Shown here: positions 43,170-62,730 of the stretch, one piece after another
Position numbering within the stretch: position 1 is the stretch's first letter
How the letters are laid out: each line of letters opens with the position of its first letter
Virus record (IMG/VR): IMGVR_UViG_3300031884_000002
Location: 289,773 to 353,772 of that record
DNA length: 64,000 nucleotides
Strand: one strand, 5' to 3'
Notes under the pieces: generated by a model
Seen by the model: the letters and a program-made list of their open reading frames with translations, nothing else
Told to the model about the DNA's origin: nothing
The model's database searches: none
Translations under genes and position numbers: made by a program

Positions 43170-44498
43170 CTACCCACCCGCTAAAGCAGGTGGGTTTCCC
43201 ACACCTAACTTTAGTTTCTTGGTTTCGCAGGTCATTGACTTGATTACTCTTTCTGTTTTATCAGATACCATCCTCAACGCCTTGCTGCGTTTTTGTTTAG
43301 GGTCCGATTTGGTTCCCAAACCAGACAAACCTTGTTTCAATATATTCAAGGACGCATTATAGTCCCTGTCGTGATGGACATTACAAATAGGACACTCCCA
43401 TTCTCTATCACTTTCCTTTAATGATTGGTTTATGTATCCACAATCATTACAGGTTTTAGAGGACGGAAACCATCTATCTATCTGGACAAACTTCCTATTA
43501 TTCCATTCACTTTTGTATTTGAGTTGTCTTACAATCTCATACCAAGATACTTCTTGTATTGACCTTGCTTTCCTATGGTCTTTCATCATATTGGAGATAC
43601 TCAAGTCTTCCATCACAATAATGTCGTGGTTTTTGACAATATCGTTGGTGAGTTTGTGGGTATAGTCCAATTTTACATTGGTTATCTTTTCGTATGTTTT
43701 TGCTAACTCAACTCTTGCTCTTTCTCTATTCTTTCCTTTCTTTGTTTTTTTGGAATGTTGTCTCTGCTGATATTCCAGTTTCTTTCGGTATTTCTTTGCT
43801 ATTCTTGGATTGGGAATCTTCTTTCCATCTGAGAAAGTAATCAAATCAATCAGTCCCAAATCAATGCCTACACTCTTGTTTGTTTTCTTAACCTTCGGCG
43901 TAAAATCTTCTTCAACAATGAAAGAGACAAAGTATTTGTTCGTCTTGGTCTTGGAAATGATAAGAAAAGCAATCTCATAGTTCTCTCCAAATGGTCTATG
44001 ATGATTTACCTTAATAGGAGTTTTGAGTTTTGGTATTGTAAGCAATCCATTCTCAAATGAGAAGTGTTGGGGAACACAAAATGATTGCTTGTCATATTTG
44101 GACTTAAACGATGGAAACTTGGCAATCTTCTTAAAAAATCGTTGGTATGCTACATCAAGTTGTCGCAAAGATTGCTGGAGAGATTGACTATTGACTTCAT
44201 TCAACCATTCAGTATCTTTCTGTTCCTTGAGTTCCGTTAGAAGTTTAGCAGTATCATTGTATCCAATACCTTTACCATTTTTGAGGTAGTATTCTTTGCG
44301 AGCATTAAGAAATCGGTTAAAGACAAAGCGGGAACATCCAAAGGATTTAGCAAAGAATATTTTCTGTTCTTCGGTTGGAAGAACTTGGAACTTGTATCCT
44401 CTGGTTATTCTTTTTATTGTCATCAGATATAAGTATATTGGACTTTTACAAGAAGTTATTTTATTTGTAAATATTTCAATGTTGTCTATGGGTCGCAT
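43170..44498 (-). CDS. tnpB: TnpB RNA-guided endonuclease (start may be MTIKRIT)
   Basis: HTH GYKFQVLPTEEQ...FGCSRFVFN, RuvC VGIDLG / IVMEDL / DRDYNAS, and Zn finger CNDCG..CPIC. Confidence 0.95.
   Translation of the reverse strand: MRPIDNIEIFTNKITSCKSPIYLYLMTIKRITRGYKFQVLPTEEQKIFFAKSFGCSRFVFNRFLNARKEYYLKNGKGIGYNDTAKLLTELKEQKDTEWLNEVNSQSLQQSLRQLDVAYQRFFKKIAKFPSFKSKYDKQSFCVPQHFSFENGLLTIPKLKTPIKVNHHRPFGENYEIAFLIISKTKTNKYFVSFIVEEDFTPKVKKTNKSVGIDLGLIDLITFSDGKKIPNPRIAKKYRKKLEYQQRQHSKKTKKGKNRERARVELAKTYEKITNVKLDYTHKLTNDIVKNHDIIVMEDLSISNMMKDHRKARSIQEVSWYEIVRQLKYKSEWNNRKFVQIDRWFPSSKTCNDCGYINQSLKESDREWECPICNVHHDRDYNASLNILKQGLSGLGTKSDPKQKRSKALRMVSDKTERVIKSMTCETKKLKLGVGNPPALAGG
43173..43194. repeat. 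IS right-end hairpin
   Basis: CCCACCCGC-TAAA-GCAGGTGGG on the plus strand. Confidence 0.85.
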
Positions 44499-46722: not shown

Positions 46723-47406
46723 ATGATTATAAAATATAAAGAAGAAGAGTTTAAATTGGCAAAATCCAGAGATTTATTAAATTTAGAATGTGAATGTTGT
46801 CATAAAATATTTGGAGCACGGAAAAAAGATATAAATTGGGCGTTAAATTGCACTTATAGAGATATGTTAAAATATTGTGGGCGGAAATGTAGTGGGAAAA
46901 CATCAAGAATTGGAGACGAACTAAACTGTACCACTTGTGGAAAATTATTTTATAGAAATAAATGTAGACAAAAACTATCCAAAAATTACTTCTGTTCTTC
47001 TATGTGTGCGTATAAACATAATAAAAATAATTTCTTGAAAAAATATGGAACTCGTAGATCAAAATTAGAAAAATGGTTAGAAGTACATTTAATTTTACTA
47101 TATCCAACATTAAATATAGTTTATAATTCACGAATGGATATAAACGCTGAATTGGATATTTATATTCCTTCATTAAAATTAGCATTTGAGTTAAATGGTA
47201 TATTCCACTATGAACCAATCTATGGAAAAGAAACTTTAAATAAAGTAAAAACTAATGATAATAGGAAATTTCAAGCCTGTATAGAAAAAGAAATTGAACT
47301 TTGTATTATAGATACAAGTAAACAAAGATGTTGTAGTGATAAGTCATCTCAAAAATATTTAGATATAATTACTAAAATTATAAATGAAAAATTGGCGGTA
47401 GGCTGA
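46723..47406 (+). CDS. Free-standing PD-(D/E)XK-type (homing) endonuclease with Zn-finger repeats
   Basis: Cys clusters and ELDIYIPSLKLAFELNGIFHY; lies antisense inside the tRNA array. Confidence 0.75.
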   Translation: MIIKYKEEEFKLAKSRDLLNLECECCHKIFGARKKDINWALNCTYRDMLKYCGRKCSGKTSRIGDELNCTTCGKLFYRNKCRQKLSKNYFCSSMCAYKHNKNNFLKKYGTRRSKLEKWLEVHLILLYPTLNIVYNSRMDINAELDIYIPSLKLAFELNGIFHYEPIYGKETLNKVKTNDNRKFQACIEKEIELCIIDTSKQRCCSDKSSQKYLDIITKIINEKLAVG

Positions 47407-47483
47407 GGTCACGCTCCCCATCCCCGTTTTAGGGGGACATACTGATTTCAAGTCAGTTCCGAATCTCATTCGGTTAACCTACC
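47393..47483 (-). tRNA. tRNA-Ser(UGA), non-canonical T-loop
   Basis: ACTGA-CTTGAAA-TCAGT, long variable arm, G73, CCA; T-loop AGCGTGA. Confidence 0.8.
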
Positions 47484-47676
47484 AATTAAATCTTAAATCT
47501 ATATTTAGAATGTCTTCTATGACAGTTGGAACATTTTTCACCATCACTTACTTTCCAAATATCACATATACACCAAGAAGATTTGTCTCCTTTGGGATTT
47601 AATTTTCTTTCCCGATTAGTCATTTTATAATCTATATCATAATATGATTGATGCATATCTATAACTATAATCCAAA

Positions 47677-47766
47677 TGGCGGAAAATACTGATGTCGATT
47701 CAGATGCACAGTTAAGGCACGTATAGTTTTCGAAACTATCCTAAGAGCCGTCTTAGTTTATTTTCC
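47677..47766 (-). tRNA. tRNA-Ser(CGA)
   Basis: ATAGT-TTCGAAA-ACTAT, long variable arm, G73, CCA; T-loop ATCGACA. Confidence 0.8.
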
Positions 47767-47768
47767 AA

Positions 47769-47845
47769 TGGAGATGCTAGTCGGGATTGAACCGACATAA
47801 TCCAATTACGGTAATTTGTTTAGGAAACAAATCCGATATAGCATC
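47769..47845 (-). tRNA. D-armless tRNA-like gene, anticodon CCU (Arg AGG)
   Basis: Perfect 7-bp acceptor GATGCTA/TAGCATC, canonical T-arm, TTTGT-TTCCTAA-ACAAA, CCA; only 7 nt where the D-arm should be. Confidence 0.65.
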
Positions 47846-47868
47846 AAAGTTTTTCACCATAAACACAT

Positions 47869-48294
47869 TCAATAATAATTTACCATTGCCCACTCAAACT
47901 CGTTATTTTTTAATTTATCCATTGCCATTTCAATTAACCACGGCACATTTGTTAATAATTCATCTCTCAACAAATCCATTTGATTTATATCAAAAATTAT
48001 TACTTCTTCTTCGGTTGTAGTTTTTAATTTTGTTAAATCACCAATAGCAGCATATACATATACTTTAAAAGTATCATCCTTTGCCATAGTACAATAATGT
48101 TTCCAATCATTTATAGTAACTCCCGTTTCTTCTATAAACTCACGCACCATAGCATCTGGTAATGATTCGGTTGGTTCTATCTTACCACCAATTCCATTTA
48201 CTTTACCAGCTTGCCATTCTGGTTTTGTTTTTCTAATCAATGCCACTTGTGTTAATTTTTCATTAAATAAAAATCCTAAACAATATTGTGTCAT
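47869..48294 (-). CDS. Nudix hydrolase
   Basis: Nudix box GGKIEPTESLPDAMVREFIEETG. Confidence 0.9.
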   Translation of the reverse strand: MTQYCLGFLFNEKLTQVALIRKTKPEWQAGKVNGIGGKIEPTESLPDAMVREFIEETGVTINDWKHYCTMAKDDTFKVYVYAAIGDLTKLKTTTEEEVIIFDINQMDLLRDELLTNVPWLIEMAMDKLKNNEFEWAMVNYY

Positions 48295-48486: not shown

Positions 48487-48684
48487 TTAGCACATTCTTC
48501 CAGTTATCATCTGTCTCCAAGGATAGTGCCTCCTGATTTTTTGAGTTACTATCCAATATTCCGTAATTATCTTACCATATTCTCTTTGATTGGAAATCGA
48601 TTTTTGTCTAATTGCATCTATTCTTTTTTTCCATTCGTCACGAATGCGTCTTCTTTTTTGATACTTTTCTAAATTATGTCTCAT
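48487..48684 (-). CDS. Hypothetical basic protein
   Basis: 65-aa ORF abutting a tRNA 3' end. Confidence 0.5.
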   Translation of the reverse strand: MRHNLEKYQKRRRIRDEWKKRIDAIRQKSISNQREYGKIITEYWIVTQKIRRHYPWRQMITGRMC

Positions 48685-48774
48685 GGTGCTGCCGGGAGGA
48701 TTCGAACCTCCATAGAGTAATTAAACTCACAGATTAGAAATCTGTTGCCTAAATCCAATTCGAGCCACGACAGC
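48684..48774 (-). tRNA. tRNA with anticodon UCU (Arg) and a long variable arm
   Basis: GCTGTCG/CGGCAGC acceptor, ACAGA-TTTCTAA-TCTGT, variable stem GAGT/ACTC, canonical T-arm, A73, CCA. Confidence 0.85.
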
Positions 48775-52366: not shown

Positions 52367-52447
52367 TGGAGCACAGTGTTGGAATCGAACCAACTCTTTT
52401 AATTAGCAGTTTTGCAGACTGCCGCCTTCCCATTTGGCTAACCGTGC
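52367..52447 (-). tRNA. tRNA-Cys(GCA) with 11-nt variable region
   Basis: GCAGT-CTGCAAA-ACTGC, U73, CCA. Confidence 0.85.
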
Positions 52448-53030: not shown

Positions 53031-53102
53031 AGGGAATGGACGGTGCCGCCCCGTCGTTTCAAGTTTACAAAACTCGTGTTCTAGCTGTTGAACTACAAAC
53101 CC
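53031..53102 (-). tRNA. tRNA-Thr(UGU), atypical (possibly pseudo)
   Basis: CGAGT-TTTGTAA-ACTTG; T-arm GACGG-GGCGGCA-CCGTC; two acceptor mismatches; no encoded CCA. Confidence 0.6.
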
Positions 53103-53200: not shown

Positions 53201-53286
53201 TGGTGCTGCCGAGAGGATTTGAACCTCTATAAACTTTCGTTTCAGATTCGTAATCTGATGCCTAATCCAATTCGAGCCACGACAGC
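53201..53286 (-). tRNA. tRNA with anticodon ACG (Arg) and a long variable arm
   Basis: GCTGTCG/CGGCAGC acceptor, TCAGA-TTACGAA-TCTGA, variable hairpin AAC-GAAA-GTT, T-arm, A73, CCA. Confidence 0.85.
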
Positions 53287-57505: not shown

Positions 57506-57580
57506 TGGTAGCAATGGAGAATTTCGAAATCTCAACTTTTCGCTTATCGAGCGAACATTCTGCCTTTGAATTACATTGCC
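57506..57580 (-). tRNA. tRNA-Ile(GAU)
   Basis: TTCGC-TCGATAA-GCGAA (C33), A73, CCA. Confidence 0.82.
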
Positions 57581-57658: not shown

Positions 57659-57744
57659 ATTAAATAAGTAAATTCGGGGTTAAAAACCGAAATCTTTCGT
57701 TTATCAATCAAATATTTTTCCATTAAATTATTTACTTAAAACAT

Positions 57745-62657: not shown

Positions 62658-62730
62658 TGGCGGGACCGAATGGATTTTAACCATTATCTCCGGTTGGATA
62701 CCGGCGTAATAACATTTATACCACAGTCCC
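62658..62730 (-). tRNA. Atypical UCC-anticodon tRNA (A33, G73)
   Basis: CCGG-TATCCAA-CCGG, acceptor GGGACTG/CGGTCCC, T-loop TTAAAAT, CCA. Confidence 0.6.

Follow-up and report, generated by a model that had tools for sequence, protein, structure and literature searches.

The stretch of DNA examined here (the window, 64,000 nt) covers bases 289773-353772 of a 353,772-bp IMG/VR virus record from a lake-water jumbo phage, with a GC content of about 30%. The last 18 kb of the window carry a dense minus-strand tRNA array that appears to continue at the start of the linear record. Within this array, on the minus strand at 47845->47769, lies a tRNA-like gene with a CCU anticodon. It begins 23 nt after the stop of a NUDIX gene (47869-48294) and ends 2 nt before the next tRNA-like gene. 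Two tRNA-Ser-like genes follow, at 47677-47766 (-) and 47393-47483 (-), with anticodons CGA and UGA; both are missed by Rfam and by ARAGORN in standard mode, although the mitochondrial mode of ARAGORN gives a partial Ser(UGA) call for the second. We read a 6-bp D-stem with a 3-4-nt loop and a long variable arm in both genes, and an 8-bp acceptor stem and a 4-bp T stem in the CGA gene, features that resemble the (8/4) tRNA-Ser reported in phages (PMC5389517). A 56-aa Cys-rich ORF (47486-47656, -) lies between the two Ser tRNA-like genes, and a 227-aa ORF (46723-47406, +) lies on the opposite strand.

Other tRNA genes of this phage are also unusual. A tRNA-Arg(UCU) of 91 nt (window 48684-48774, -), a tRNA-Arg(ACG) of 86 nt (window 53201-53286, -), a tRNA-Cys of 81 nt (window 52367-52447, -) and a tRNA-Lys(UUU) of 88 nt (genome 1121-1208, -) all have normal D-arms but long variable arms or loops, which is unusual for these isotypes, and the three canonical Arg tRNAs share one acceptor stem (GCUGUCG). 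Four further Rfam tRNA matches above the gathering score, at window positions 57509-57580, 57666-57737, 53031-53102 and 62661-62730 (-), are not reported by ARAGORN at its default threshold. Elsewhere in the genome, a lone tRNA with anticodon CUA, an amber suppressor that ARAGORN labels Pyl, is found far from the array (131456-131530, +), and the intron mode of ARAGORN calls a tRNA-Leu(UAA) with a 192-nt insert after the anticodon (43627-43907, -), which may be an intron-containing tRNA. At a low threshold ARAGORN gave 193 mostly spurious calls, which were disregarded.

The preliminary description of the CCU gene, which reported perfect acceptor, anticodon and T arms and an encoded CCA but only a 7-nt connector in place of a D-arm and an 18-nt extra region, proved accurate. 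The gene has a perfect 7-bp acceptor stem formed by GAUGCUA (47839-47845) and UAGCAUC (47773-47779), an anticodon arm (47815-47831) with the 5-bp stem UUUGU/ACAAA, the loop UUCCUAA including U33, and the anticodon CCU at 47822-47824, a T arm (47780-47796) with the 5-bp stem GUCGG/CCGAC and the loop UUCAAUC, and a discriminator U followed by an encoded CCA (47769-47772). The Rfam tRNA model (RF00005) matched it with 36.3 bits against a gathering score of 29, but only by deleting the D-arm and inserting 15 nt in the variable region. The fold z-score was -3.69, and none of 200 shuffled sequences folded as well. ARAGORN did not call the gene in standard, intron or mitochondrial mode. An assembly error, which had been named in advance as a reason to discard the observation, can be excluded: the locus is base-for-base identical in three further assemblies from other samples (the region is identical in JGI 3300032676, Logan SRR11285887, Logan SRR26084415 and Ga0316219), and 17 lake-water or freshwater metagenome runs hold 99-100% of its sampled words. 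No RNA run holds the locus.

Relatives of the gene were found first through its NUDIX neighbor. A BLAST search of the 2.7-kb region against GenBank phages found no match, and exact-motif scans built only on the window sequence found nothing in IMG/VR. The closest relative, L002 (NUDIX 69% identical), has a perfectly canonical 76-nt tRNA-Arg(CCU) starting 2 nt after the NUDIX stop. At the same offset the window keeps a 16-nt scar of such a gene (GUGUUUAUGGUGAAAA; 47851-47866, -), comprising the acceptor 5' strand, U8-G9, the D-stem 5' strand and the start of the D-loop, with 14 of 16 bases matching the 5' end of the canonical tRNA at L002:5494. An attempt to read the upstream GUGUUUA as the true acceptor 5' strand failed because no complementary 3' strand exists downstream, and it is therefore a scar. 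A second relative, L012 (NUDIX 59%), has the same unusual layout as the window, with compensatory changes in the anticodon and T stems. The two Ser tRNA-like genes are conserved with compensatory changes in L002 and L012, and related small Cys-rich ORFs follow the tRNA(CCU) genes in both; these ORFs look like mobile-element cargo that could drive the local gene swapping.

A motif scan of metagenome and IMG/VR sequences added L020/L022, which have wholly different but complementary acceptor and T stems. In the metagenome the CCU-specific pattern otherwise matched only the window's own phage (L017) and four chance sites in coding DNA, and in bacterial genomes it gave only chance matches in coding DNA; a scan with the D-stem freed but the linkers fixed gave only chance hits besides L022. 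A covariance model built from these three then found three more: L011, whose NUDIX protein is identical to that of L002, L053, a variant of the L022 type, and L051, a divergent sequence. Homologues scored 33.6-34.1 bits against RF00005. In L022 (1917-1999, -) and L051 (2300-2382, +), a UCU paralogue of the same layout lies directly upstream of the CCU gene, with two U-U mismatches in the acceptor stem, a G-A mismatch in the anticodon stem and a bulged G in the split D-stem described below; a large subfamily (UGG ... YGCA) shares the bulge. A 151-nt contig in one lake run shows the same core between GC-rich arms. A strict search for other anticodons in the same layout found none in this genome, the Lys(UUU) hit being a normal tRNA with a long V-arm.

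Comparison of these sequences suggested that the D-arm has not been lost but split. The 7-nt connector begins with U8, A9 and one further U, equivalent to position 22 (47836-47838), and continues with CGG (47833-47835), equivalent to positions 23-25, and a single A, equivalent to position 26 (47832), which varies across the family. CGG, one base, and then the anticodon stem is how the 3' strand of a D-stem (positions 22-25, then 26) precedes position 27 in any tRNA. On the other side of the anticodon arm, a UUA linker (47812-47814; positions 44-46 equivalent), which is 3-4 nt long in 81 of 85 family members, is followed by CCG (47809-47811), equivalent to the D-stem 5' strand (positions 10-12), and then by U13, an Arg-type D-loop AAUUGGAUUA (A14, A15, G18, G19, A20 and A21 equivalents) and a U48 equivalent (47797-47808), in place of a variable loop. 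CGG pairs with CCG, forming a D-stem whose two strands flank the anticodon arm. A canonical tRNA-Arg(UCU) in the syntenic slot of a related phage, L054, has the D-arm CCGG-AAUUGGAUUA-UCGG, the same words in the normal order, with 14 of 15 bases of the displaced segment matching. The gene therefore looks like a normal tRNA-Arg in which block 10-21 and block 22-46 have exchanged places. Folding a D-arm around the anticodon hairpin as an "intron", or using AAUUGGAUUAUGU as the anticodon arm, gave no pairing. The preliminary description had recognized a D-loop segment relocated 3' of the anticodon arm, and this is correct, but AATTGGATTA occurs 12 times in the 354-kb genome against 3.5 expected, such that on its own it is weak evidence, and conservation in the homologues carries the weight.

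The preliminary description also likened the gene to the D-armless tRNAs of animal mitochondria, and a rival structure of this kind, in which the 7-nt connector is unstructured and the extra region forms a small variable-arm hairpin (CCG-UAAU-UGG), was at first difficult to exclude. The single-sequence minimum-energy fold draws this hairpin, and in the 8 closest sequences it stays pairable through one-sided changes. The same sequences showed compensatory changes in the acceptor, anticodon and T stems, and in the split D-stem two double changes (CGG/CCG to CAG/CUG in L051, and to UGG/C(G)CA) and one wobble change. Nearest-neighbor energies slightly favored the split D-stem (-17.5, against -16.3 for the hairpin and -14.2 for neither). 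The two structures could be separated only with a larger family.

A looser motif scan of IMG/VR, which allowed any D-stem but fixed C35-U36-A37-A38, UAA-N-UGG, AUG and GUUCRA, listed at least 120 rows. The covariance model found the layout in essentially every locus listed, giving at least 97 matches, at least 86 of them distinct, with GC contents from 34 to 62%. In the alignment of the 86 sequences, 96.7% of cells are paired, against 61% when shuffled, and 19 of 20 pairs show double changes, including all 7 acceptor pairs and four of five T-stem pairs. The first split D-stem pair is CG 58, UA 16, GC 9, AU 3 and the second GC 54, CG 17, AU 11, UA 4, both paired in every sequence. The third pair (10-25 equivalent) is unpaired in about a quarter to 40% of members, depending on the alignment, and some subfamilies have only 2 clear pairs or a bulge. 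Because this alignment is fitted to the model, we also parsed 85 sequences independently by anchoring on the anticodon arm and the UAA motif. Pairs 11-24 and 12-23 were then paired in 99% of sequences, and overall 220 of 255 positions were paired, against 131 +/- 6.7 for shuffled partners, with none of 2000 shuffles as high. RNAalifold, given no structure, predicted the same four helices. The hairpin alternative fails on these data, since the strand before UAA varies (GAG, GUG, GGG, GGA, ACG, UCG and others) while UGG is invariant, leaving most members unable to form it, and that strand instead covaries with the 5' connector. The same CCG...UGG potential also exists inside the canonical D-arm of L054, where CCG pairs with CGG. 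A truly D-armless tRNA of the mitochondrial type is thus very unlikely.

Conservation at the positions fixed by the scan pattern, and the bias to NCU anticodons, are partly circular, but these elements are also present in all 8 sequences found without the pattern, including the UGG and UUC of the elbow. Not fixed by the pattern were U8-A9, which is invariant in 85 of 85 parsed members, the base after GG, which is A in 83 of 85, the D-stem covariation, and the first anticodon base, which is only U or C. The members found by the model alone carry ACG (4), UCG (2) and GAU (1). In total, anticodons were UCU 56, CCU 21, ACG 4 and UCG 2, against 2 others, indicating an essentially arginine-anticodon class that keeps A20. 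In E. coli and T. thermophilus, A20 is the main ArgRS identity base together with C35, and the bacterial identity set also includes U36/G36 and A/G73. The window gene has A20, C35 and U36 but lacks the purine discriminator: it carries U73, whereas the phage's other Arg tRNAs and most family members have A or G (A 34, G 32, U 14, C 2 across the family). L012 has C at position 20. CCA is encoded in 52 of 83 members. The preliminary description had left charging identity unknown; the anticodon, A20, C35, U36 and the replacement of canonical tRNA-Arg(CCU) at the same locus all point to arginine, an inference from sequence alone.

It remains possible, though less likely, that this is a structured tRNA-like RNA that is not an ordinary Arg decoder, for example a decoy or nuclease-resistant substitute aimed at host tRNA-targeting defenses, or a tRNA charged by another synthetase such as SerRS, given the long region 3' of the anticodon arm. 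One cultured-phage copy is annotated tRNA-Ser, the window copy has a U discriminator and sits beside the unusual Ser tRNAs, and the altered body would be expected to change what D-arm-reading host factors see. However, the region is a single-stranded D-loop copy and not the helical arm that SerRS reads, G73 is not conserved, and the ArgRS determinants A20, C35 and U36/G36 are kept. A 12-bp acceptor/T branch and a canonical anticodon loop fit EF-Tu and ribosome use.

Three lines of evidence suggest that the RNA stands in for a normal tRNA-Arg. L011 and L010 are 98.6% identical over 2876 nt up to the NUDIX stop, where they diverge into the new form and a canonical tRNA-Arg(CCU), respectively. 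The window carries the scar of the canonical gene next to the new one. In a different gene neighborhood (nucleotidyltransferase, then tRNAs, then a 229-aa protein), L022, L051 and L053 carry the new form where L054 carries canonical Arg(UCU) and Arg(CCU). In addition, ARAGORN at its standard threshold called no other CCU tRNA in the genome, and AGG is used at 2.35 per 1000 codons, or 7% of Arg codons in 254 long ORFs. A search for a phage ArgRS (PF00750) found none, such that a host enzyme would have to accept the altered body.

The upstream scar might instead indicate a dead recombination product, a pseudo-tRNA left when the canonical gene downstream of NUDIX was disrupted. The region is mosaic, with homing-endonuclease-like ORFs nearby, and a contig from a lake-metagenome run (X18) keeps the scar, the tRNA(CCU) and the Ser(CGA) gene (window 47657-47868) with one difference but has unrelated sequence in place of the NUDIX gene, diverging exactly at 47868, the NUDIX stop. 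This reading is contradicted by the perfect helices and the intact CCA and anticodon loop, by the occurrence of the same architecture in 86 distinct sequences with compensatory changes in every helix, and by its presence in cultured phages of alpha-, beta- and gamma-proteobacteria, and we regard it as very improbable. BLAST with one family member found the class in Agrobacterium phage Atu_ph04 (at about 112818-112896 of MF403007.1), Stenotrophomonas phage SOVA965 and Limnohabitans phage DC31, all unannotated at that site, and in Alishewanella phage Slicko01 (17417-17495), where the copy is the one annotated tRNA-Ser; the model confirmed all four. ARAGORN found nothing in 85 of 86 family members. 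The motif was not found in the 401 bacterial genomes searched, which were sampled from the class that contains Idiomarina.

Another improbable alternative is that the gene is permuted only at the DNA level, and that RNA cutting and rejoining restores a canonical tRNA, as with the circularly permuted tRNA genes of Cyanidioschyzon merolae (PMC3978253). In those genes the 3' half precedes the 5' half, joined through a processed intervening sequence, whereas here the acceptor 5' strand comes first, the 3' strand and CCA come last, and two internal blocks are swapped. Restoring the canonical order would need three cuts and three ligations inside the body. No bulge-helix-bulge motif was seen at the junctions on non-systematic inspection, and the covarying helix and short conserved linkers indicate selection on the permuted RNA itself.

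The interpretation we favor, with reasonable but not complete confidence, is that this is a functional phage tRNA of a distinct structural class, most likely an arginine tRNA reading AGG. The preliminary interpretation of a rearranged, conserved tRNA is partly supported: homologues with compensatory changes were found, but "D-armless" should be replaced by "D-arm split and transposed", and the mitochondrial analogy does not hold. What the sequences themselves establish are four covarying helices, invariant U8-A9, conserved A20, Arg anticodons, a wide distribution in phages and exchange with canonical tRNA-Arg(CCU) at the same locus. The remainder is inferred, namely that the RNA is expressed and cut out of the polycistronic array like its neighbors, folds into a near-normal L, is charged with arginine by the host ArgRS through A20, C35 and U36, and reads AGG on the ribosome. 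In this view, which rests on textbook tRNA geometry, the coaxial D/anticodon stack becomes one continuous hairpin arm of normal length with a small internal loop, in a three-way junction, and the D-loop runs as a single strand from the top of that arm to the T stem, free to make the G18G19/T-loop elbow. In the canonical L-shape base 9 touches the 12-23 pair, base 45 touches the 10-25 pair, and base 21 lies beside the 8-14 and 15-48 layers, so the three new joints (9 to 22, 46 to 10, 21 to 48) would connect bases that are already neighbors, with strand polarity kept, and U8-A14, A15-U48 and the contact of G18G19 with the T-loop would all be retained. The likely origin is a tandem duplication of the D-plus-anticodon block followed by loss of the outer copies, or an equivalent block transposition.

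Canonical class I tRNA-Arg genes, such as L002:5494-5569, L054:2892-2967 and L013:1486-1563, share with this form the 7/5 acceptor/T branch, the anticodon loop, a CCU or UCU anticodon, the Arg-type D-loop AAUUGGAU(U)A with A20, the T-loop UUCRANY, an encoded CCA and the same genomic slots. They differ in the order of segments 10-21 and 22-46, in having a D-stem that closes its own loop between positions 10 and 25, where only 7 nt lie in the window gene, in having a separate variable loop, and in forming a four-way junction. D-armless mitochondrial tRNA-Ser(AGY/UCU) of mammals and nematodes (reviewed in PMC7609411) similarly have no hairpin at positions 10-25, join the acceptor and anticodon stems by a short connector and belong to the AGR/AGY codon family, but they lack a D-stem and the G18G19/T-loop elbow and are flexible, whereas here the D-stem covaries and the elbow bases are conserved. 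Allo-tRNAs and (8/4) tRNA-Ser of bacteria and phages (Mukai et al., PMC5389517) are likewise non-canonical tRNAs found in phage tRNA clusters and missed or mislabelled by standard tools, but they keep the normal segment order and change helix lengths (8/4 or 9/3, a 6-bp D-stem, a long V-arm), whereas this gene keeps 7/5, an eighth acceptor pair being U opposite C, and changes topology. Literature searches on D-armless, permuted or unusual phage tRNAs returned no description of this layout, although their limited coverage does not prove that the class is undescribed, and a 2020 review of natural non-canonical tRNAs contains neither the word "phage" nor any word beginning "permut" (PMC7609411).

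A more speculative possibility, which we consider unlikely but not excluded, is that phages have evolved and spread a topologically rewired arginine tRNA that still fits ArgRS, EF-Tu and the ribosome but no longer presents a normal D-arm, which would let it escape host factors that recognize or cleave canonical tRNA-Arg, such as defense nucleases or modification-dependent surveillance. On this reading the swap would be a counter-defense adaptation rather than a neutral oddity. The findings raise the question of why phages, and so far not the 401 bacterial genomes sampled, use this form, which also offers tRNA engineers a natural three-way-junction scaffold and has carriers in culture. Since ARAGORN does not call the class and most cultured-phage copies are unannotated, phage tRNA complements and codon-supply analyses are probably undercounted for AGR codons. 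The cloverleaf segment order is among the most conserved features in biology, and the known natural exceptions shorten or lengthen arms, or are repaired at the RNA level; here, more than 80 natural sequences with strong covariation indicate that the tRNA core tolerates a block swap, while the bases needed for the L-shape and for ArgRS recognition are kept.
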